A stretch of DNA of 64,000 nt from Hyaloraphidium curvatum SAG 235-1 (GCA_025558095.1 JAIVFI010000011.1:310001-374000); one strand, 5' to 3'; counted from the stretch's first letter, positions 7,620 through 21,400 are shown. Notes: generated from the sequence alone by a model not told the origin. Numbers and translations: made by a program.

Positions 7620-9340
7620 ATGCTGACGACGGAAGACGCCGAGTTTGACGAAGCGGTCGCTCCAGACCGCGAGGGTGCCGTGGCCGCTGTCCGCGAGACG
7701 TTTGCGGCCTTCCGTGTAGACGCGCTCGCGGCAGAGGCCCGTGCCGCCGAGCTCCTGTACGTCGACCGCCTTGCCTCGAGTTCGTCACTTGACGAGCTTT
7801 GCTGGGCTCTAAAACACAGTGCTGCTTCGCGCAAGGGCACAGTGCCCCCGGGAGACACGCTCGCCGTCGTCGAGCGTGCGTTGCAGTTGGCGGAGGGTAC
7901 GCTGCGCCTTGCCGAGGACGCAGACGGCCTCAATGGCGCATTGCGGGTTGCGGACATGCTGGACGCTGCGGAAGCTGGCTTCAGGAAGGTGGTCACTTCC
8001 TACCGCGTGGACGAACGAGGGACGCAAACAGGGCTCCCCGCCGCAGATCCAAGCAGTCATCGACAAGACCCTGCCGCTCTTCCGCGAGTACGGCTACCAA
8101 CCTCCATTCGACCTGCCCCCTTCGCCGCAGCCCCAGACGGCCGTTGCCGAGCCGAAGACCCCAACCAACCTGTTTTCTCCGCCGCCGCCCAAGTCTGCTC
8201 ACCTGCCTGATACGCCTGTCGCCGGAGGCCGCGAATCCAACGCGTCTGCGAGCACCATGTCGGCACCTCGAACACCTGCCGTGCTGAAGGAGTTCAGGCG
8301 TGTGGAGGAGGAGACCTGGGAAGACAGCCCGTCCATGGAGACCCTGGCGGGCGGGCTTTCGCAGAAGGGTCTCGAAATCTTGCGAGGTTCGGAAATCACT
8401 TCGGGCTTCAGTCCCGTCATTTGGCTGAACAAGGTGCCGTGCGCGTGCAGAGGGCAGCCTGGGAGCGCCGGGGACGCCAGATCACAGGCAATACCAAGAG
8501 CCTGAAGCACCCCCGACAGTTTCGCCGCCTAGGGAAGCTCACTACGAGGAGATGGGCGAGCCCGTTGCCCGTCTTCCGACAGCGCAGGATGCGGAACCAA
8601 CGGCGGCAACTATTCCAGCGGCTCTCGGAGACTTTGATGCGGCATCTCCTTCGTCACCCGACTACCGCCGCGCCGACTCTGATGAGATGGAGGACACGTT
8701 CGCGAACCTCAACCTGCAACATGATTTTCCGATTGCGAGGGGCCGGGAACCGCCGTCCGTGCCCCGCGGCCGTCCTTCTTTTTATCAAGCGGACGATATC
8801 GACAAGTATGTAGCCAACGAAGCGCTCCTGTCTCTCGTCGTGAGCTGACATCTTCCCTCAAGCACCTTCTCCTCGCTCCCTCCTCGGCCGCACGTACCCG
8901 CGACGCCTCACACTACCTCGCGCATTCCCGTTCTCACCCCACGCGCTCCCGTTTCTGACTCTCTCTACCCGCTTCTTGCGCCGATAAGCGAGGAAGAGTA
9001 CGAGGATGCCATGGACGCCTTTGGCCGCCGCGCCACCCCCTTGGATTGGCTGAACGAGTGCGTGGCGCAAGTCAACGAGGCGCTCACGGACGTCCGATTC
9101 GACATGGCGGATGACGGCGCTGCTTCGGAATGGCGGGAGGTCACCGTCAAGGAGCTCGAAGTCATGCTCGACATGCGTGAGTACCAGGGCTGCGACACTG
9201 TTTTGCACCGGACTCAAACTCCGTCCTGTCACAAATCAGCGGAAGGGAAATGCATGGGATTCGTCGCGGCGTGCTTGAAACTCAATCGATTGGCGCCGGC
9301 GACGAAAAAGGGGCAGAAGGCGTATCGAATCATCGAGTGA
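7620..9340 (+). CDS. SKA3: Probable spindle and kinetochore-associated (Ska) complex subunit Ska3-like protein, 5 exons
   Basis: Helical N-terminus ending in REYGYQP (cf. Ska3 KYGYxP), SP/TP-rich linker with SPSMETLAGGLS, and C-terminal PISEEEY...LDWLNECVAQVNEAL...LKLNRL...AYRI helical domain. Introns ~7989-8046, 8387-8449, 8806-8862 and ~9177-9239 keep frame. Confidence 0.6.
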
Positions 9341-9411
9341 CTAGAGTTCCATTTCCCGCCGCGTACAAGCTGCCATGTCCAAGTCTCCTGCAAATCGAGC
9401 ATTTCCGGTTC

Positions 9412-12400
9412 CTAAGGATCGAATCCGAGCGCTTTCAGCCGAATCTCCACGGCCTCCGCCCCCGCGATGGCTTCGTCCATCGCGTCCCGTGCTCCCTTTT
9501 GAATGTTTGCTCCCGAACGACCCAGTTCGTCCAAGCGCCGCTTCAGCATGCGGTAAACCAGGGGACCAAAGTGTTTCAGAACGAAGTTGTGCTTGGGCTC
9601 GCTCAGCAAGGGAGTCTGCTTTCCGACAACACGGTCGATAACGGCTGGCAGTGACAGCAGGCCCTGCTCCAGCTCGCTGTCCTCCTTGCCCGTCGCGCGC
9701 CGCACCAGCGGGGCTGCGTTAATCGCCAGTTGGTTGAAGGACTTGTACGTCTCGATCTTGTCACCGATGATGCCCATCATTTTCGTTATCGCCTGGAGTA
9801 TCGAACCGGACCCGCCGTCCTCGGTCGCATCCTGTCTGGCACGCCGGAGAAGCACGACGGCCGCCGTGATGTCCTCTTCCGTTTCGACTTCCAGGAGAAG
9901 AGGGTGGTCTCCCCCGTGTTCGAAAAGGTGCTTCACGACGGGGTGGCGCTTCTCCTCAATCCAGACGGCCCCGAACATGCAGCGCGTCATGAGGACGAGC
10001 CAGGACGTGATGGTATCGCGGCACTGCTCCCTCTCGTCTTCAGTCATCTGCGCACCGATCTCAAGGTTGCGGAACGTCCTGATCTCCGCAAGGGGGGCGA
10101 GCGGGCGGTCGAGCACGCATAGCTCCTCAAACTCGAGCCCGCGGCAGTCGTCGATTCCCAAGGTCAGCAAGGGATCAAGCTCTGCGAAGGCGGTGGACCC
10201 TTGCTTGCTAGTGTGCAGCACCACGAAGTCGAGCGTCGCTCTTCTGATGAGGCGCCGCGCCGTCTCTACGCTCTGACACAGGATGACAGGAGGCGAGTCC
10301 CAAAGGGAGGAGCGGATCACGGCATCAACTGCAAAGTCATCGAAATCCTCCTTGAAGTTGGGCTTGAGCCAGCGCTGCAAGACCGCGTCGAGAACCTGAA
10401 GCACCCCGACGGGGCAGCGGAAGTTGATGCTCAAGTTGACGGTCTTGTGTTCCAAGATCGCACCGACAGCCTGGCACGCATCGAAAAGAGCCCTGCGCAC
10501 GCCCGAGCGCCTGGCTGCGGACTCGCGTCCGACGCTCTGCTTGCTGTCCAAACCCACAACGACCGTGTTGGGCTGACCGCTCGACAGCGCAAGGAGCTTG
10601 ATCTGCAGCGGCGTCAAGGACTGGGCCTCGTCGATGAGCATGGGTGCAAACTCCTTGCTGAGCTCTGCCATCTCGGGGCTGTCGAGCGTGCGGCGCATCT
10701 CGTCCCAGACGCCCTTGAGGTACTCCCACAGATCTTCCTCGTCCTTGAGGTTGTTCTTTTGCTTCCACTCCCGGTACCACCTCAGCTTGTAGCGATCGAC
10801 CCACATGTTGGCGATCTGGTCGTCCACCTCCTTGCCTTCCAGCCGGGACCGGGCTTGCTGAGCGAAGTCCGCAAAGACAACACGCCTCCAATCTTTCGGC
10901 CAGAGAGGATTCAACCGATCCAGCACGGTCACTGCTTTGACCTCGGGGTACGACCGAAGGACCTGGTCGCGAAGTCGGGTGGTCGGCAACACCACGACCG
11001 CCCCGGTCTGGGCCTTGGCAATCTCGGAAAGAACTATCGAGAACCGGCGTCAGAGGAAGAAGATGCAAAAGCTTCCGGACACGACATACCAGTCGTCTTG
11101 CCGTTGCCCGCAGAACCCTTGATGTAGAGCGTGGTTTGGTGCTCGCACGCCAACTTAATGGCTTCCAGCTCTTGCCTCGTCAGGACCGCCGAGCTCCGTC
11201 CGGACTGCGGGTCGGTTTCGATGAGCATGTCAAGGTTGCCCAGGTAGCGGCGGGGAAGGAAGAAGCCCGCGCCCATGTCCGGGTTCTTGTCGCAGTCCAT
11301 CTTGAACTTGGTGATGATGTCCCAGAGAACCTCGGCATGTGACTTGAGGCGCACGGTTTCCCGCTCCTGTCGCTCATGTTCCTGCGCTTCTTCGTCGTTC
11401 TCCGAATCCGATGCGACAGGTGCCACTGGAGTCCCTTCCTCCTCGAGGCTGGCCTTGATCATGACAGCGTGCTCAATGATTTTCGAGAAGCCCTGTGAGG
11501 ATAGTTTGTGAGAAAATGCGACCACGCATGCCGCCGTGGCAGTTCACTTTGTGGTTGAGAACGATGGCGGTAATGAGGTACCTGTTCGCCTCCAGCTCGA
11601 TGTAGAAAATGCGCTCCTTGTGGTTCAGGCGGCCTTCGAAAACGTGGTTGTCGACCTTCTTCTGGTCGTACCACCGAGCACGGCCGGAAAAGACCTTCAT
11701 GATTTTCGTCTCGAGCTCCGGGAAGTGCGTCAACTCGCGAGCGGTGTGTGCGGTGACCAGAACACGGATGTCGCCCTTGCCAGCTCCGCGAGGACCTTCC
11801 GACGGTCCTGCAGCGGTCATTCCAGTGATGCTCTTAGAAAGCTTCTGTTCGCCTCCGGACCTCCGCATCTGCCTAGTCAGTTCCTCGATGGTGTCTCCCG
11901 CTTCTTCGAACGACGGGATCTCTTCGGAATCGTTGACGTCGCCCTGAGCAGCCCGACGCGGCGGGAAAAGGGCACGCACGAGATCGGTCTGTTCGGGTTC
12001 CTTAGGCAGCTTGTCCAGAAGCGCCGTTGCCCAGGAGTAGATGGTGCGGTAGCCTTCCTTCTGCTGCCTCTCCTCTTCCGCCAGCCTGAGCCGCTCCTGC
12101 TCTTGCGCGGGGGTCTCCGTTTTCGGCGGGACCCATCCCTTGGGATGGACGTTCGTGCAGCTGGGATCCTTGCAGTTCCTGCCGTTGGGGCATTGCCGCG
12201 ACTTTGGCGCTGCTTTCGCGCGCTCTTGGGCTTCCTTTTCCGCCGCAACCTTGAGCACCTTTTCGCGGTCCTCCAGCTTCTTCTTGAGCTTCACCGCGAC
12301 CTTCTTCCCCGCCTCGTATTTCAGGACCTCGTTAAGATCAGCAATGGCGCCCTGCACCAAATCCAAGTTCACCGCCGCTGGGCCGGAAGGCGGGTCCGTT

Positions 12401-15066
12401 TCGGCGTCCCTCAGCTGCGCACGAATGAGCAACGCTTGAAGCCGTTCCGGAGCTCCCAGCTTGGTCCTCGGGAGAGCCTGCTCGACATCGCTAAGAGCGC
12501 CCGGCTTATCAAAGTGGAGCTTGCACCTGGCTCTGGATACAATGAGTCCGATCCGCTGGGGCTGCATCTCGATGGCTTGAGAATACAGTGCGGCAGCTTC
12601 TGGCCAGAGCTGCTCCTTCTCTTTCTCCTGTGCGTCGAGGAAAAGCTGGTCGAAAGGAGAAAGCTTGGCCGAAGAAGACGGGGGAGGACCGTTTTCGGCG
12701 GGCTTGACCTCGACACGGAGGACGACGTACTCCTTGCTGTCATCGGCAATCATCGTGAAGCCGGATCCACCCTTGAGAACATCCGCGGGGAAGGCCTTGG
12801 CCAACCCCATGGAGTTGCGCCCGTCGAATAGGTTGCCGCCCACGAAATCCGCCCAGGTTTCCACGCTGATGTCCTTGTTCACGACGGCGGTGGTGCCCTT
12901 GTTCAGCAGCGTGATCTTGAACTGGTACGATCGGCGCCAGGAACTAGGTATCTTCGTGATGTCGTTGGACCCGTCGGCCGGGAGGATAGTGAGGTAAGCA
13001 CCGAGGTGCTTGGCTCCGCCAGTCGCCGGGTGCACATCCACGTCGAAAGTGACGGCAGTCTCGGCCTTCCACTTCACCGGCGTCACATTGGAGCTGCCTT
13101 CTAGATTTCGCAGCTTCCTGGCGTCAGCCACAGCGTAGAAAACAAGCTTCTCCGTCGTGTTGATTTCGCTGCCGACGAGAGGGGCCACGGCAAGCTGCCG
13201 CGTGAGTTCTTCCTTGCTAGGCCCGGTCTTGGGCTGCTTCTGCTTATTCAGAAAGCCGGGCTGCATCACCTTCTCCTTGCTGATGACCTGCTCCAACTGC
13301 TGCCTGAGCTGCTTCGTTCTAGTCTCCCGTTCCGCGCGGGCCTGGTTGAACTCCTTCCACGCAGAAGGCTCGTTGTACTTGACGACGTCCAAGCGGATCC
13401 TGGCGAGCAGCGAACCCTTAAACGCTTCGTTGTTCAGTCGGGGATGCACGAGACGGTCCCAGAGAGACCTATCGAGCTGCCCGATCACGGCCTTGGTGTT
13501 CTGCGGATTGATCACGACCGGTTGCTGTTCGTTGCGTTCGTACTCCTTCCCGGCATTGTCAACTGCCGAACACCAAGGCTTCAAGCGCAGCGAGAATTCA
13601 GCCGGAAGCGGGGTGGTGACCACAAGCTCGAGCGGCACCGGCCCGGAAGCAGGGTACTCGTCCGGGAAGCCGACCCGGAAAGCGATGTCCTTCCACCGGA
13701 TCTCTTTGCCGAACATGTCGTTGTCCGCAACTCCGACCTTGGCGTCCGGCCGCGTGGGCACGAGCACCTCGAATTCGACTTGCTTCTCGGCCACTTTGGC
13801 TTCCATCACCGGGCCCCACTTTCTCGCCAGCTCCTTTGCGATCCTCTTCGGGTCGTACGTGCGCCGGACCTTGCTCCCTCGCCAGTGGGCGGCGATGACC
13901 GATGCAGCATCCTCGCGCTTCTTCGACTCCTGCGCTTCGGTCCATTTGGCCAGCTCCTCGGTTCCCATGCCCTTGATTCTCGCCTCGTCATCGATCTCGG
14001 CGATGCGGTCGTAGTCGCCATCGATCGTCTTGGCGTCCTTGTTCAGAGCCTTCGCGAGCTCGTCGAGGCCCATGTCGTTCGTCAAGCGCAGGACGATGCT
14101 CCAAATGCTGCCGCGGATCTTCTGGCCGGCGACCTTGAGGTCGTCCCCCTTGTCGACCAGGTAGCCGCCAAAGCTGTTCACGTCCTCCGTGAGGAGCCGG
14201 ATGGCCGGCACACGCTCGATCTTCAGTTTGGACTGCATCGACTTGATGACTCCCTTGGCCGGCTCGGGATCCTCGCCTAGCAACCGTTCGAGCAGCTCGT
14301 ACGCCTTGGCAAGGTCCAGCGCGGCCCGAGACAGGTCCTGGTTCGCCCATCCCTTGTAGCCCTTCTTCAGCCTTTCCATCAGCAAGCATCTGTCGCGGGT
14401 GGCCCGGAGCAGCGCGTAGATGACGCCGACATCCTTGGCCAGCTTGGCCCGGACGGATTTCGACTCGCCGAGGTGGTGCGCGAGCGCGGAGAGGTTGAGG
14501 AGGATGGCGGTCTGCAGCTTCGAATCCAGCAACGCGGCCGCACCGACCGTGTTCAGCTCGACTTTTTCCGTGTCGGGAAAGATGGGCCGGAAGCCGCTCG
14601 CGGAGCCGCCGGGGGCGTAGAGTCCGTAGATGGCATGCACGCGCTGGTCCAGGCAACCCCAGAAGAGGTCGCTGAGCGTGTCGTGTCCGGCTTTGAACAT
14701 GCGGAAAAGAGCATCGGCCATGATCGCGCGGTCCCCGGGGGTCCGCTTTCCGGCGGGCGTCCTCCGGTCCGTGAATAAGTCCGCGAGCTGGTCGAAGTCC
14801 GCCGGAGCGTCGGACGAGATCCCGCTGGCCAAGGGTTGGACAACCGTGTCGGTGTCATCGAGCGCCTGGGAGAATCGGGACACGGCCGCCTTGTTCTCCT
14901 CGAGCCACCGCGTCCGCTCCTTGGCCGAAGCGCCCGGGTCCCGCGGCGGCGACTTCCGGAGCGCCTCGTAGTGCTTCCGCGCCGTGCCGAGGAAATCATT
15001 GTAAGCAGCAAAGAGCTTGTCGGAGTCCAGATTGGCCCAAGAGGCCGCGCCGGCGGCGTCGGCCAT
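9412..15066 (-). CDS. ~1847-aa multidomain UvrD/SF1 helicase-like protein (IQ, RWD-like, MATH, TPR, CCCH, RelE/ParE-like, SF1 helicase); TRANK1-like module
   Basis: Exons 15066-11548, 11492-11090 and 11033-9412 join in frame via GT-AG introns. Helicase motifs: I GSAGNGKTT, II MLIDEAQSL, III VGLDSKQS, IV LSINFRC, V GIDDCRGLEFE, VI VLMTRC. Confidence 0.85.
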
Positions 15067-15431
15067 GGCGAAATCTGGGGGCGTCGACGAGGTCAGAGAC
15101 CTCCGTGGGCGCCTCAAAATCCGCGAATCGCGTGCCTGGCGTTACCGGCGAATGTTGATAGCGCTTCTACCGGACTAAGCGGCCCGCATCCGGGTCATCT
15201 GGGTGCGGGAGATGGGCCAGTGTAGCCGTCGGGGAAGGTCAGCCGACGGGGAGGCTGTGCCTTGCACCATCGTCCGCGGAGGCCCCTGGCGGAAGGAGAA
15301 AAGAAGCAATCAGACGGATGTGTTCGCGAATTCATCTCTTCAGCAGTAGAAGGCATGGGGCATCTAAGTCTGCGCCGGCCGAGAACACGGCTTCCCCGGC
15401 ACGCCGACGCCTAAAGGCAGCCGGAAGACCT

Positions 15432-16802
15432 CTACGCGTCCGACACCTTCACGGGCTTGTACACGACCTTCCTCGTCTGCAATGATGCGCGTCAGCATTT
15501 TGCGATTCCAAGCGCGGCACCGCACGGACCTTGATGTAGCTCCAGCGCAGCCTCTTCCAGTACCACGCCAAACCGAGGAAGAGGGTGTTGATGGCCAGGA
15601 ACTTCCAGCCCATTTTCTTGCGCTCGTCGTGCTCCGGCTCCGAAGCCCAGGACAGGAACTCGATCACGTCCTTGGCCAGCTGGGATTTGGTGTTGGGCGT
15701 ACCGTCCTCGTACTCGACTGCGCCGTCGTACAGGGGCGCCGCCATGGAGATGGCACCGCCGGGGAAGTAGGGGTTGTAGTGGAGGCCCTCGCGGACCGAG
15801 ACGCCCGCCGGGGGGTCGCAGTACCCGGTGAGGAGGGAGAAGAGGTAGTCCTGACGGCGGACGCGTCAAGCTGGGGCTGCCACCGCAGGCGACGGTTCGG
15901 CATACCTTGCCGCTGTGCCTGGCCTTGATGATAAGGCTGAGGTCCGGCGGGTAGGCACCGCCGTTGGCCGCGCGCGACGCCTCCTCGTTCGGGTAGGGCT
16001 TGGGGAAGTAGTCGGTGAGCTTGCCGGGGCGGGTGAACATCTCGCCGGCGTCGTTGGGGCCGTCCGTGAACTCGTATTCGCTGGCGAACGTCTGCGTCGC
16101 CGAAACACAGTCAAGCAACGAACGAAGCTGGCCAGGCGCGGTCGGCCCACCTTCATCTCAGCCTCGGTGTGCGCGACACCAATCAGGTTGCGGAAAGCGA
16201 TGCGCTCCATCGAGTGGCATGCAGCGCAGACCTCCTTGTACACCTGGTATCCGCGGCGGATGCTGCCGGGAGGTCGCGTCAGCGTCCGTTGAGTCAATCC
16301 GCCGTGGTCGGCCGAAGTCCCGTCCCAGCTGGCTTCCGTCCAGCCATCCCGCCCCATCCAGCTCCCCGCAGCAAACTCAATGCAGGCCCATGTCCCGGCG
16401 GCGTCCGCACGCGCCGATCCGATGGCCACGGCGCCTTGCCCAGGCGCCGATCCCAGCTCTCAGGCAGCCTACTCACGCGGCGTGGTCGTAGGTCTTGTAC
16501 CACTTGTCCGACTCCCACGGCATGTGCGCCGGGTGCAGACCGTGATCCGGCGTCGAGAATGCGTGGCCGGCGGGCACCACGATCCTTGTCATGCCGCCCA
16601 CGGCCTCCTTCAGCGAGGCCTGCCACGACGCCAGCCGCTCATCCGTCACGAGGTACTCCGAGGTCAGGTACGCGGCCGACGAGCAGCCGAACAGGGTGAG
16701 GATGGTCGACTTTGCGGACACGGCGCCGCCTGAGGATGCGGTGCCCGCCGCCGTCGAGGCGAAGCGGGTCGCGGTCGCGCGCAGCAGTGGGCGGGCGAAC
16801 AT
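15432..16802 (-). CDS. CYT1: Cytochrome c1, mitochondrial (complex III), multi-exon
   Basis: Presequence, [22 protein letters not shown] heme motif, [36 protein letters not shown] and C-terminal TM helix. Confidence 0.97.
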
Positions 16803-17185
16803 CGCGGCAGCCGAGCGACCTGCGGGGGCGCGGTGACGTCAGCGCTCTGCGGCGGCGGCTCGGTGGCCCGGTGGGCGCGGCAGGCGGATGGCGCGGCGGG
16901 GGCGTGGCGGCGGTGCCCGCGGGGCGCGCCCGGCCGCCGCCTCCCCCGCCGCATCGGCCGGCCGATGCGCACCTTGCTCTCCGAGCTGAGCAGCAGGTCC
17001 TCTCCGTCCGTGCCTCGGGATGGACGAGGCGCTCGCGTTCGGTGGCGCCAAAGAGAGACGCTCGCTCGGAGCGATTTTCGTAGTTGTGCCCGCTAACCGC
17101 CGCCGACGCCGACCCCGAACACCCCGCGGGCGCCGCATTCGGGCCTGGAGAGGCGCATTGCGACCATGGATACGCGGAGATAGCG

Positions 17186-18400
17186 ATGGCAGACCAGGAG
17201 TCGGTCCCCGGATGCGCGATTCCCCGACCCGGCTCACCCCGCACGCAGTCCGCTCGCCCAGCTCGAGGCCGAGAATGCGGCCCTCAAGGCCGAGCTCGAC
17301 GAGTTCAGGACGTCGTCCAAGGAGCTCGAGGAGGAGCTCGAACGCGAGCTGGAACGCGCACAGGCCGAGAACGGGACCCTGAAGGCGCGGGCGGATCAGG
17401 CTCGCAAGGAAGCGGATGACTGGAAGGTCCGCCTCGGAGCGCGCTGCGGGGAGGCTGGAATGCCCCTCTCATTTGCATTCTGGTCTCCAGGAACGGTTCA
17501 ATGCCCTCCAGCGGAGCTCGGCGGGGCAAATCTCGGAGCTCGAGCTGGAACGCGACGCCCTCCGTGCCCAGGCGGCCAAGGACGCCTCCAGGATCCGGGA
17601 GCTCGAGATCGGCAACGACGAACTGGAGATGGCAACGCGGGTGGCCATGTCCTCCATCCAGGACCTCCAGACAAAGTACAATCAGACACTTGAGAGAATG
17701 GTTTATCTTCAAGAGGAACTGGACGTCGCAAAGGAGATGTCGGACGACCTCCAGCGCATGAAAGACGAGCTAAGAGGCAAGCGGGACTTTTGCCTTGTGC
17801 CTCTCTTCCGCTTGACGCCGCCGTGTCGACAGATGCCAACCTGGAAATAAGCGTGCTCCGGTCCCGCTCCAACTCCGCCAACAGCTCCCCTGGCCCCTCC
17901 CCCCACCGCCCCGCGCCGATGCCCGGCATTTCCGAACGCGGCGACGCCACACCTTCTCCCAGCCCCGCTCCCGGCGCCCCCGTCTCCCCCACCGCGCTCG
18001 CGGAATCCCTCTCCAACATCACCCTCGAATCGCCAAAGCCCCCAGAGACGCCGCAGAAGCCGGCCGCCGCCCCCGCGGTGCCGCAGACCCCGTCGACTCC
18101 CAGCGCGGCGCTGGCGCTCGTCAATTCCGTGACGTCGGCCTCGGTGGGGGTCATTACGGACCTGCTCAGCAAGGCCAAGGCGATCGAGGGGCGGTTGGCA
18201 GCCGCAAGAGGTTGGCGCGCGAACGATCTGTTCATCTTGGCTTGCGCTGATGCCAGTCCCCAGCCAAGTACATCAGCCCGCTCCTCATCCCGTCGGCCGA
18301 CTCGAAATCGGGGCAGACCGACGCGGCGTCGGACGGCAGCAACGATACCCGACTCCCCGGCGCCTGGGACATCGAACGGACGCCTCCGGCGGCTACCTAG
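17186..18400 (+). CDS. nudE: Nuclear distribution protein NudE/NDE1 (dynein regulator), multi-exon
   Basis: ELDEFRTSSKELEEELEREL, RIRELEIGNDELE, QRMKDELRD coiled coil, Pro/Ser-rich linker, and C-terminal KAKAIEGRLAAAR. Confidence 0.88.
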
Positions 18401-18456
18401 CCTTTGCCGTTTCTACAGGAGATCTATACCCCGCCAAATGTACAGGCCCCGCGAAT

Positions 18457-21400
18457 CTACGGCTTCTGTGTCTGCGTCGGCGTCAGGAACGCGAGCCGGT
18501 CCCAGAGGTTGCCGAACCTGGCCTCGCCCTCGGTGGCGGCGGCGGGGGCGGCGTCGCCCATGCCCATGTCTTTGAGCATGTCCGCGACCTCGTCCTCCTC
18601 GTCCTTGGGGGCTTCAAAGTCCGGCGCGGAAGGGGGGGCGTCGGGGACCAGCCCTGGCCGCGAAAACGAAGGCGGGGGCGTCGAGGAATAGGTGATCAGG
18701 TCCTCCTGGGGGAGCCTTGGTGCGGGCAACGGCACGCTGCCGAGACTGGGGGAGTAGCTCGCCTGCAGCCCGAACGGTTTCGGAGGCAGCGGCGGGGGAG
18801 GGCCGGTCGGCAGCGGGGCGTCCTCGCGCGCGATCGCATCGCGCCACGGCTGGCTCTCGGCCAGAATCGCGGAATGAGTCTTTACCAGGTCCTCGGGCTC
18901 GTGGTCGGTCGCCTCCGATTCGGCGTCGGCTGCCCGGTGCGGAGAAAGCTCGTCGAGCTCGGCGAGGTCGTCGTTGGAAGAGTCCGCCCGGCGCACCGGG
19001 CGCGATGCGGAGACGGAACCAAGAAAGTCGAGACCGGCATCGTCGAGCGTGAAGCTGCCGGGCATGCCTGGCGTCGTTGGTTCCTCGTCCACGTGGGGCT
19101 CGGCCGGTGCGGTTGCCAGCTCCGCATAAGCACCATCGTGCGTAATCTCCACCATCGAGTCCATTCTCGACACGGCTGCGCTTTCCGAGCCCGGTGTGAC
19201 CGCGGCCGTCGCGAAACCACCCTCGGTGTCCTGTTCCTCGTCTCGTGAACGATTCTGGTCGCCATCGTCATCGACCGGTGGAGCATCACCGTCGGACTCT
19301 TGCTGGGCTTCCCCGTCCGAGCCTTCAAGGTCGCTCTCGGCAGCACCGTAGCCCTCGTCAACGCCGCCACCATACTCACGGTCGAGTTCGCGGAGCTCGC
19401 GGTCAAGTTCGTCCTCGTCTTCGGGAGACAAGGCATCGGCATTGTCGACCTCGGCTTCGTCGGGGACTGCTTCGTCCTCAGCCGTGCCGTCATCCTCGGC
19501 ACTCTGGTCGACAAGCCGCGGAGTCAAATGCACGGTGTGCTCCGTCTCTTCCACGGATTCCGCGCTGCCCACGCTGGCTCGTCCCTCAGGGGGGCCACCA
19601 TCTCGAGGACCGTCCTCGTCCTCTTCGGGCCCCTCATCTTCTCCAGACCAGGGGTTGGCGTCCGGCGGTGGGGGCATCGCAGAGAATCGGTCCTTTTCTC
19701 CACCGATGTCAGCATCGTCATCCGAGTCGGAAAAGTCGTTGGTGGGAACGTTGGGAAGCGACAGATCCGGCTCCAAACCGGTCCCGCCTTCATCACCGTC
19801 GACCTTGCCGTAGAAGGTGTCCCCAACGAAATCCTCTTCGTCTGCCTCTGCGTCCGATGGCGCTCCGGCACCCTGTTCCGAAGCCTCGGCGCCTTCCACG
19901 CTCTCCATGGCGCCAGGCTCAGCGACAGTCTCCGCCGCCGGCGGTCCATCCGTAGTCGTAATTTCCGATTTCAGAGGCGACAAATCGACGACATTGACCC
20001 CGTCTTCAGCAAGGATCTGAAGAGGGTAGTAAACGCCGTCGAACCAATCGCCGCCGCGTGTGAACTTCTTCATCAGGCTTTCGCGGGCAATGCTCTCCAG
20101 CCAAAGCTCGCGGCGAGTGTAGAACGGTTGGGTGAGGAGCCAATGCTGGAAAGGTTCGTCGCCGCCGAGCGAAGCTGGCAGGAGGGCGTCCACGGCGCGT
20201 TGCCGACCGGCAACTTGCTTTCCCTTGCCAAGAGCCGCTTCTTGCTGCGCAATCGCAGCTCCGGCCGCCGACAGGGATCCGAGCACCTCCTCAATCCCTG
20301 CCTGGTTGCCGCTGTAGACGCCACAACTGAGCTCGACCAGGGCAATCCAGTGATTCAACAGCCGCGTCCCCTTCTCGGTAAGCGCCAGAAGCTCCAAATC
20401 CATCAGAGGATCGCCCGACGCCTTCCAAGAGCCAATGGGAGTGGTCGAGTACTGATGGACGATCGCACGGATCGACTCGCACACTGGGGTCCACCACGGC
20501 ACCAGGACGATGCCCGCTTCGCGCGACGTCCCGTACCAAGTCCGGAGCTCATGTTCGACCTCATACGCATACCCATTCCAACGTTCCTCCTCGTGCCCAG
20601 CGTCCGCGTCCACGTTTGGCGAAAAAGCGGGACGGACCCTCTCCAGATACTCCCGTGCCCGCGGTTCAATCAGCGCCCAGCTGGACCGCAGGCGCCTTAC
20701 TTCGGGGCTCGTCGCGGCCACCATGACCGCAGCCGCAGTCCCATGACAACGGTACGTGCGGCGCAATATCTGCGATGTCGCAAGAAGGTGGGTGATTGTC
20801 CTGGCGCGGGCGTGAGCGGGGGTAAAGACGTTCTCGTTGCCGGGTACAGAGGTCCGGTCCGGAACGGAATTGAGGATTGCGGATATGAAAACGTGCACCA
20901 GGTATCTGTGAAAGTCCCGAAGGAGAGTCAACTCCCCCGTCAGCTCCGACTCTGGCGCGATAGCCTGCAGAAGCAGCACGTGGCCCAGCCTGGCCCCGCT
21001 TTCAGGCGAGACACATCTGACAAGCAATGGCCTCAGCAGCTCCATCTCCAAGATGGCCAACTGCCGCGCAAGAAAGTCCGGATCGAACGACTCGACCGTA
21101 TAGTCCGGCTGCGACATTCGAGCGATCGTCCTTTCCAGAGCCTCCGCCTTGTCTTTCCGGATAGACAGGTCCTCAATGAGCCTCCGCAGCGACGAAGAGG
21201 ATAGATTAGGGTTCGCAAGTCGCGACATGTCCAACTTCATCTGCGCTTTCGCCACTTCCTCCTTTGTCGCCATCAGACTGCGGGTCAAAGGTGACAGGGC
21301 GATGCGAGGGAGCGGAAAGCCAGATTGGTAAGGCAGTTGCTCCGCCAGAGCTTCAATAGGGTCGCTTTCGTCGTCGGGCTCCGCTTCAGGGGCGGAAGCC

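Follow-up and report, generated by a model that had tools for sequence, protein, structure and literature searches.

The window, that is, the whole stretch of DNA that was analysed, comprises 64,000 nucleotides of the genome of Hyaloraphidium curvatum SAG 235-1. A large gene on its minus strand consists of three exons that splice in frame, as had been proposed in a sequence-only reading of the window, and the translated exons are identical to a public 1847-aa protein of H. curvatum, DFJ74DRAFT_705017 (P0001 in the following). The features of the gene, in window coordinates, are as follows.

9412..15066, minus strand: whole coding region, three exons, 1847 aa and stop codon (P0001)
15066-11548, 11492-11090 and 11033-9412, minus strand: exons
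15075..15135, minus strand: 5' UTR intron, 61 nt, GC..AG, absent from the X1 transcript contig
11493..11547, minus strand: intron 1, 55 nt, GT..AG, phase 0
11034..11089, minus strand: intron 2, 56 nt, GTATGT..AG, phase 1, right behind the Walker A codons
13936..15066, minus strand: N-terminal region, aa 1-377, without known domain
13855..13917, minus strand: IQ-like motif, aa 384-404, with invariant residues
13372..13797, minus strand: first beta-sandwich, aa 424-565, from AF2 secondary structure, with MATH as the lead
13186..13365, minus strand: long helix or helices between the two sandwiches, aa 568-627, from the AF2 model
12691..13164, minus strand: MATH/TRAF-C domain, aa 635-792
12307..12660, minus strand: TPR domain, three repeats, aa ~803-920, from the family profile against the PDB
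12145..12192, minus strand: C-x5-C-x4-C-x3-H zinc finger, aa 959-974, Nab2-type spacing
11548..11778 (aa 1097-1173), minus strand: RelE/ParE-superfamily (BECR) fold domain, aa 1097-1178, from the fold match
9826..11285, minus strand: SF1 (UvrD-like) helicase core, aa ~1243-1710, Pfam PF00580, interrupted by intron 2
11117-11091, minus strand: Walker A, GSAGNGKTT
10632-10621, minus strand: motif II (DExQ), DEAQ
10554-10528, minus strand: motif III
10425-10411, minus strand: NFRCP
10143-10129, minus strand: RGLEF
9993-9970, minus strand: motif VI
9415..9825, minus strand: C-terminal tail, aa 1711-1847, without known domain

P0001 is one expressed polypeptide from one spliced mRNA. A transcript contig of 7606 nt from run X1 spans all the exons, and in it both coding introns, as well as the 5' UTR intron, are precisely removed. 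The position of intron 1 is identical in the paralogue on contig C9. The objection that the N-terminal part and the helicase could belong to separate transcripts is contradicted by the same contig. The 1847-aa protein could also be an annotation artefact in which an adaptor gene has been fused to a separate RelE-helicase gene; such a fusion would fit with the two short introns that lie close to the junction and with the lack of any homologue of the N-terminal part in two paralogues. However, besides the precise splicing of the X1 contig, in the orthologue P0002 one frame of 1859 codons runs without interruption through the entire protein, the RelE-like domain shares exon 1 with the MATH, TPR and CCCH modules, and the layout of paralogue P0003 matches that of P0001. 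An artefact is extremely improbable.

The N-terminus (aa 1-377) is helical. This region is common only to P0002, P0004/P0010 and, weakly, P0003, and searches with it gave no significant match. The IQ-like motif that follows is present as previously read, though sub-threshold in P0001 (Pfam IQ 14.3 bits, cut-off 20.3) and borderline in relatives at 19-20.6 bits (20.6 in the P0003 exon ORF and 19.7 in P0002). Its residues A387, A388, W395, K399, R401, and R402 are invariant across the relatives; there is one copy in P0001, and two copies lie in tandem in P0002 and P0003. An RWD-like domain had been read in aa 424-565. The AF2 model of this segment has 10 strands and one short helix and is all-beta, in contrast to the alpha+beta, UBC-like RWD fold. 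The YPASGP motif, taken as an RWD-type YPxxxP turn, is missing from P0002, P0003, P0011, and P0004, and Pfam RWD has no match. Language-model neighbours of the segment are all MATH families, at 0.84, and in the P0004 segment homologous to it Pfam MATH reaches E 0.0015. RWD was not confirmed, and the segment is probably a degenerate MATH-like domain. The link to translation surveillance of the Gcn2/IMPACT type is likewise unsupported, because it depended on the RWD call.

The helix between the two sandwiches is, in the model, reminiscent of the TRAF-N coiled coil; the alignment to TRAF3 chain 8zuk_A begins at model residue 201. The second sandwich is predicted to be eight-stranded and antiparallel and superposes on USP7, SPOP, and TRAF domains, so that a MATH-like domain is upheld by fold, with Pfam MATH sub-threshold (16.1 bits for aa 635-795, cut-off 32; best family member E 0.0016). 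The TPR domain was confirmed by comparison of the family profile with solved structures, including SPAG1 (2e-16), TOM70 (1e-12), and RPAP3 (1e-11), and also Hop, PP5, and CHIP. The matches cover profile positions 9-124 with E values of 2e-16 to 1e-5 over the whole range, natural TPR proteins lying between 1e-12 and 1e-5, and Pfam TPR_9 matches P0003 at E 1.8e-5. At the positions that we take to be those of the EEVD 'carboxylate clamp', the Asn residues do not appear to be conserved. The zinc finger has exactly the spacing noted earlier, and its four ligands (C959, C965, C970, and H974) are invariant in five relatives, with Pfam Nab2-zf4 below cut-off in P0001 (14.2 vs 20 bits) and at E 0.02 in P0011.

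Behind the finger lies a segment of ~90 aa that reaches the boundary of exon 1, with its final residues GFSKI encoded in exon 2. In the AF2 models, which rest on shallow alignments of 7-10 sequences, it forms a compact beta-alpha-alpha-beta-beta-beta domain that superposes on solved RelE/YoeB/ParE toxins. All of the top 50 PDB entries matched by the model are RelE/ParE-superfamily toxins, among them RelE bound to the ribosome and Cami1, a CARF-RelE protein. The RelE/ParE-like segment is thus borne out by fold, and not by any sequence model: Pfam has no match to the domain in P0001 (in one of ten members YoeB_toxin comes to E 0.15), a PDB profile search with the domain matched no toxin, and a YoeB model searched against the H. 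curvatum genome gave no match. In a low-support hhalign alignment (probability to YoeB <2%), YoeB Arg65 (R65) is in register with the invariant R1152, which sits in an R-[IL]-[FV]-[YF] strand. In the same alignment H1172/K1173 are at the place of YoeB His83/Tyr84, and K1136/K1137, in the preceding strand, align with YoeB K49/H50. In the RNase members of the superfamily, catalysis relies on an Arg in strand 3, His/Tyr at the C-terminal strand and Lys/Glu in strand 2. A basic/His cluster (Lys, Arg, Glu, and His) is invariant across the family. No antitoxin-like inhibitor or partner was identified.

The helicase core carries the full SF1 motif set that had been read from the sequence. Motifs I, Ia, II, III, IV, V, and VI are all invariant in six relatives, and Pfam UvrD-helicase (PF00580) is matched at 34.1 bits, above its cut-off of 23. 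UvrD is the best match of the helicase profile in the PDB, at E 0.02, and PADLOC reports GajB at E 2.4e-5. The relative P0008 passes the Pfam SLFN-g3_helicase model (29.8 bits, cut-off 24) and matches AbiO, Nhi, and GajB. The UvrD_C model has no match, motifs IV and V are closely spaced, and a family-specific N-terminal extension of the helicase carries an invariant GNLDML motif. Conservation of the C-terminal tail extends to P0002 and to the P0008 group. Seven of the eight modules named from the sequence hold, and RWD alone fails.

DNA is the usual substrate of UvrD-like helicases, and ParE-type members of the RelE/ParE fold are not nucleases. The RelE/ParE-fold domain may be non-catalytic, either binding ribosomes, RNA or, like ParE, topoisomerase, or capping the helicase structurally. 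The sole enzyme would then be a UvrD-like translocase on DNA or RNA, within a scaffolded helicase for DNA repair, replication conflict or chromatin. We consider this unlikely, since the invariant Lys/Arg/Glu/His cluster is aligned with YoeB catalytic residues, the CCCH finger just upstream is spaced like the Nab2 fingers that bind poly(A) RNA, and the motor of P0008, which passes the Schlafen group-3 model, is of a type that in Schlafens accompanies an RNase. P0001 is probably an RNA-cutting or RNA-unwinding effector, and we give the combined RNase-plus-helicase biochemistry slightly better than even chances.

The gene had been placed in an accessory-looking end of the window. This is contradicted by its surroundings: it is flanked by cytochrome c1 and a Ska3-like (kinetochore-like) gene, and the block is collinear with a contig of a divergent relative, in which P0002 also adjoins cytochrome c1. 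P0001 and this orthologue are 33-53% identical and the neighbouring genes 40-67%; its divergence is similar to that of its neighbours, so that nothing indicates a gene that is mobile or evolves unusually fast. Four full paralogues and one fragment share aa ~1011-1845, and among the paralogues the part from IQ to CCCH is common only to the C9 copy. The family is tiny, with 4-5 paralogues per genome, and by sequence comparison one RelE-helicase core is carried behind unrelated N-termini. The gene of the relative P0014 is preceded, at a distance of 9 nt, by the end of an ORF that carries a MYND finger. An exhaustive protein search gave 8 clusters among 1.84 billion representatives, and family motifs found no bacterial, archaeal, or viral relatives, with 185,579 prokaryotic species genomes covered. 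In the exhaustive search no named or described protein showed the domain combination, and a helicase fusion is not mentioned in two surveys of multidomain proteins of the RelE/BECR kind. The combination, already suspected to be undescribed, was found in almost no other sequenced organism.

The same RNase and helicase biochemistry could serve a housekeeping role, as a lineage-specific factor for mRNA or ribosome quality control or decay. Its logic would be comparable to that of Upf1 with SMG6 or of ribosome-rescue helicases, with MATH and TPR recruiting the ubiquitin or chaperone machinery. The conserved syntenic block, the full-length orthologue kept in a divergent species with neighbour-like divergence, and the spliced transcript of an expressed gene are all consistent with such a role, and the Nab2-type finger and the RelE fold both suggest mRNA or ribosomes. 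A core quality-control factor should, however, be widespread, which the 8 clusters are not, and a set of 4-5 paralogues that differ by swapped N-termini is seen more typically in conflict systems. A housekeeping role appears improbable. A conflict or defence role is favoured over it because the family is tiny, with several paralogues in each genome, and joins the same core to unrelated N-termini.

Since no described protein was found with the combination and P0001 is a single polypeptide, one chain that unites a sensor, RNA binding, and a nuclease-helicase is the best working model. This was the idea of the sequence-only reading, and the architecture and the single mRNA support it, with the exception of its RWD part. 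The conserved C-terminal core, the putative effector, is the RelE/ParE-fold domain joined directly to the UvrD-like SF1 ATPase/helicase. Before it lies a lineage-specific, presumably regulatory and targeting region made up of the helical N-terminus, the IQ-like motif, the beta-sandwich, the long helix, MATH/TRAF-C, three TPRs, and the CCCH finger. From the placement of R1152, H1172/K1173, and K1136/K1137, the RelE-like domain may be an active endoribonuclease. RNA or RNPs, perhaps mRNA on the ribosome, could be what the helicase loads on, remodels or feeds, and the finger may add binding of single-stranded RNA. MATH, TPR, and IQ might bind peptide ligands or calmodulin, by which the effector would be recruited or released. 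Overall, a RelE-fold/UvrD-like effector core behind a lineage-specific regulatory region, with a conflict-type role favoured, is a reading to which we give an even chance. A defence role specifically, by RNA-directed shut-off, is tentative. More speculative still is an innate-immunity or abortive-infection-type effector of the chytrid lineage, in which TRAF-like MATH, TPR, and IQ modules would detect a ligand of non-self or stress origin and release a RelE nuclease that is directed at ribosomes and coupled to the SF1 helicase. If true, the logic of bacterial CARF-RelE and vertebrate Schlafen proteins would have been invented independently in this eukaryotic lineage, and the paralogues would be alternative sensor heads on one effector core.

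RelE-fold toxins are, to our knowledge, regarded as essentially prokaryotic. Here the fold forms part of a genuine fungal gene that has introns, is expressed, and is conserved in synteny, and it stands together with eukaryotic adaptors and a helicase. Provided that the nuclease is active, P0001 would represent a new class of regulated RNase-helicase effectors in eukaryotes, a tractable case for RNA-level defence or surveillance in early-diverging fungi, and a case for the repeated origin of a 'nuclease plus SF1 motor' (Schlafen, Nhi, and RelE-helicase). The conserved core and swapped N-termini are in effect natural chimeras with which sensing could be separated from executing parts.

TRANK1-type eukaryotic proteins resemble P0001 in that a single large chain holds both TPR repeats and a helicase of the UvrD-like kind. 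No TRANK1 was found by shared words in a protein search covering TRANK1-length proteins, and in the literature library that was searched no paper links TRANK1 to UvrD or RelE. Compared with the MATH/TRAF adaptors (USP7, SPOP, and TRAF1/3/6), P0001 is without RING, TRAF zinc-finger, BTB or protease partner domains (the Pfam scan found no RING or TRAF zinc fingers), and its sequence similarity to them is sub-threshold. The full SF1 motif set is shared with SF1A helicases of the UvrD/Rep/PcrA type and with defence helicases (GajB of Gabija and Nhi/AbiO), but the UvrD/Rep/PcrA helicases are very distant, at E ~0.02 to solved UvrD. Among eukaryotic proteins, the RelE-fold examples so far are small toxin-antitoxin fusions for which gene transfer is suspected (PMC11980606). 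E. coli RelE cuts in eukaryotic ribosomal A sites, and the survey of multidomain RelE/ParE toxins lists no helicase fusion (PMC11980606). Bacterial precedents are Cami1 and a fusion of a RelE-like domain to a helicase that has been noted next to Tiamat type I-K systems. Cami1 is prokaryotic, with chains of 372-379 residues and a CARF sensor, whereas P0001 is eukaryotic and has a regulatory region of MATH/TRAF-C, TPR, IQ, and CCCH modules. Schlafens act in antiviral and translation control. The Schlafen core domain is absent from P0001 by Pfam, and P0001 itself scores below the SLFN-g3 model, which only P0008 passes. Schlafen group III proteins such as SLFN11 and SLFN13 likewise join an RNase module to a C-terminal SF1 helicase in one eukaryotic protein, but their nuclease is the Schlafen core, whereas the putative nuclease of P0001 has the RelE/BECR fold.

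The giant gene at 9412-15066 consists of three open frames lying head to tail on the minus strand of the window. The frames are joined by two coding introns, and a third intron lies in the 5' UTR.

11547-11493, minus strand, intron 1, 55 nt, phase 0, GT..AG
11089-11034, minus strand, intron 2, 56 nt, phase 1, GT..AG
15135-15075, minus strand, 5' UTR intron, 61 nt, GC..AG, 9 nt upstream of the start codon, removed in the transcript contig of public run X1

A search with exon 1 retrieved the public protein P0001, deposited as 'hypothetical protein DFJ74DRAFT_705017' of Hyaloraphidium curvatum (1847 aa). Its sequence is continuous across both exon junctions, and a script comparison found it identical to the concatenated exon translation. 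Homology searches were carried out exon by exon for the window and with the public P0001 or its parts for the whole protein. X1 is the sole public run that contains this stretch (0.97 of its words), and a 7606-nt contig from this run spans the whole gene, skipping exactly both coding introns and the 61-nt 5' UTR intron. A spliced form therefore exists, with the N-terminal and helicase parts on one transcript-derived contig, in agreement with the two introns and single transcript proposed in the sequence-only reading. Because the contig extends into the convergent neighbour, it is uninformative on the 3' end of the transcript. The closest relative, P0002 (1859 aa), is 39% identical to P0001 over its full length and is encoded by one unbroken frame on a 17.9-kb Logan contig of either genomic or transcript-derived origin. 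A gene-fusion artefact was rejected on the basis of the spliced X1 contig and the single frame of P0002.

The protein carries a conserved core, a RelE-fold domain followed by an SF1 helicase, behind a variable head. In P0001 the head comprises IQ, beta-sandwich, helix, MATH, TPR and CCCH elements. The H. curvatum genome (G000) contains four full paralogues, namely the window copy on contig C11, one on C9 and two about 30 kb apart on C12, together with a fragment on C14.

G000:C9:716034-721766, paralogue P0003, the only copy sharing the IQ-to-CCCH part, with introns at the same positions as in the window gene
G000:C12:555753-558184, paralogue core with unrelated upstream sequence/N-terminal ORF
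G000:C12:584288-586606, paralogue core with unrelated upstream sequence/N-terminal ORF
G000:C14:211562-212080, paralogue fragment, a 165-residue helicase fragment only

The region common to all paralogues is aa ~1011-1845, and P0003 has aa 378 onward in common with P0001. In metagenome contig k141_297793 (ENA), the gene for P0014, a shorter RelE-helicase relative, is preceded by an ORF that encodes a MYND finger (L010:840-1808, Pfam E 1.4e-8); this ORF stops 9 nt short of the gene and may supply the RelE-helicase core with another N-terminal head. An exhaustive phmmer search with aa 1-1173, the part ahead of the helicase, against 1.84 billion representatives recovered eight proteins, none with a functional name: P0001, P0002, P0003 and five fragmentary or shorter proteins from metagenomes. 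Word-based homologue searches returned family members only. Family motifs found no relative in 185,579 prokaryotic species genomes or in viral contigs, and one extra locus (L008) in metagenomes. Among solved-structure sequences, single-sequence and profile searches yielded no match with exon 1, exon 3, the RelE-like segment, both beta domains or the N-terminus; the matches were limited to weak ones to UvrD for the helicase and strong ones for the TPRs.

The full set of SF1 helicase motifs noticed earlier is indeed present. Walker A (GSAGNGKTT), Ia, DEAQ, motif III (G-DSKQS-G), NFRCP, RGLEF and the TR pair in motif VI show no variation across six relatives, and P0001 scores above the Pfam UvrD-helicase cut-off. 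The best solved relative found with the family profile is UvrD, at E 0.02 only. PADLOC gave weak matches to GajB, Nhi and AbiO, which were stronger for the family member P0008, and P0008 in addition scores above the cut-off of the Schlafen group-3 helicase model. Together, the invariant motifs, the Pfam score and the weak UvrD and PADLOC matches point to a UvrD-like SF1 enzyme that has diverged strongly and has a predicted intact ATPase site.

The RelE/ParE-like segment was recovered at the level of fold. A model of aa 1085-1180 (pLDDT 77, pTM 0.68) was built from ten aligned sequences, among them three further H. curvatum paralogues and relatives from metagenomes. It runs strand-helix-helix and then into a four- to five-stranded sheet, and Foldseek matches it best to toxins, namely YoeB, RelE, HigB, YafQ and ParE (E from 3.9e-3, probability 1.0). 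Sequence models gave nothing significant for this domain, and hhalign of its profile against E. coli RelE gave nothing useful. The hhalign alignment of the family with E. coli YoeB is in register at low probability; it places YoeB R65 (strand 'HRLVY') on the invariant R1152 ('ERIFY'), K49/H50 on K1136/K1137 and the C-terminal H83/Y84 at the invariant N-H-K of 1171-1173. These YoeB residues are catalytic, and the RelE-like domain may have a competent active site. According to the main rival explanation, the RelE/ParE fold would serve for binding, without catalysis, and would be attached to a helicase of the DNA type. We lean slightly towards RNase-helicase biochemistry.

The remaining modules of the head are resolved to differing degrees. 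The predicted TPRs (aa ~803-920) are well founded, as the family profile matches SPAG1, TOM70, RPAP3, Hop, PP5 and CHIP, the TPR domains of which are three-repeat, with E-values of 2e-16 to 1e-5. The CCCH finger (aa 959-974) has the exact C-x5-C-x4-C-x3-H spacing and four ligands invariant in 5/5 sequences, but Pfam Nab2-zf4 matches it only sub-threshold. Similarly, the IQ-like motif (aa 384-404) has invariant key residues, but it scores below the threshold in P0001 and close to it in relatives. Two such motifs occur in tandem in P0002 (aa ~361-400) and P0003 (aa ~412-455); in P0001 the first has been lost and one remains (13855-13917). For aa 1-377, phmmer, language-model look-alikes (noise level only) and solved-structure sequences revealed no relative outside the family.

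A model of aa 405-800, built on an alignment of seven family sequences (mean pLDDT 81), has a clear MATH/TRAF-C sandwich at aa 635-792, in its second half. Foldseek matches this part to SPOP and USP7 (E 4e-7, probability 1.0) and ESM Atlas matches it only to MATH families, which confirms the MATH-like domain proposed earlier. Ahead of this domain runs a long helix (aa 568-600), an arrangement as in TRAFs. The segment at aa 424-565 had been read as RWD, and this assignment was rejected: the model has ten strands and a single short helix, no relative keeps the YPxxxP-like turn, the homologous piece of the family member P0004 matches Pfam MATH (E 0.0015), and every language-model neighbour is a MATH cluster, with a score (0.84) that is a lead only. 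The alignment of this first beta domain with the MATH domain by hhalign is in register at 2.7% probability, too low for evidence. Our best guess is that the segment is a second, degenerate MATH-like sandwich.

The window from ~7660 to 20710 is collinear with L009:1-17878, the Logan contig (SRR23967301) of a divergent relative that carries P0002. The shared genes encode a Ska3-like protein, the giant protein, cytochrome c1, two further small genes and a RasGEF-like protein. Protein identity is 40-67% for the neighbours versus 33-53% for the giant protein. This collinearity and the comparable identities contradict placement in an accessory region; they argue for a locus that is old and syntenic, and for a giant gene evolving not conspicuously faster than its neighbours. 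The cytochrome c1 gene (15449-16805, minus strand) lies directly upstream of the giant gene on the same strand, and its coding part is apparently intron-split near 16265-16394. The giant gene has no introns on L009, a contig that could be genomic or could derive from a transcript.

Overall, the feature is real, and the earlier description largely stands except for its RWD assignment and its placing of the gene in an 'accessory' setting. As the simplest mechanism we propose an effector that is regulated and directed at RNA: its CCCH finger and RelE-like domain would contact RNA, perhaps at the ribosome, its helicase would provide translocation or remodelling, and its peptide-binding modules would govern recruitment or release. 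Rarity, paralogy and head-swapping favour a role in conflict; the conserved gene order and an unremarkable divergence speak for a stable function in the cell. A defence function is considered rather doubtful.

Helicase fusions are mentioned neither in a 2025 survey of RelE/ParE toxins with one or several domains (PMC11980606) nor in a 2026 preprint that classifies BECR proteins, and the eukaryotic cases in both are small toxin-antitoxin fusions. No description of the eukaryotic architecture of the giant protein was found in the non-subscription literature, nor anything in the literature linking TRANK1 to UvrD or RelE. In a 2026 preprint on Tiamat, a RelE-like domain is noted at the N-terminus of a bacterial helicase, and the CARF-RelE defence protein is cited. 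The giant protein is a new eukaryotic variant, of predicted function, of the known nuclease-helicase and multidomain-RelE theme. In logic, its closest analogues are Schlafen group III proteins, bacterial Nhi-type nuclease-helicases and bacterial RelE fusions.
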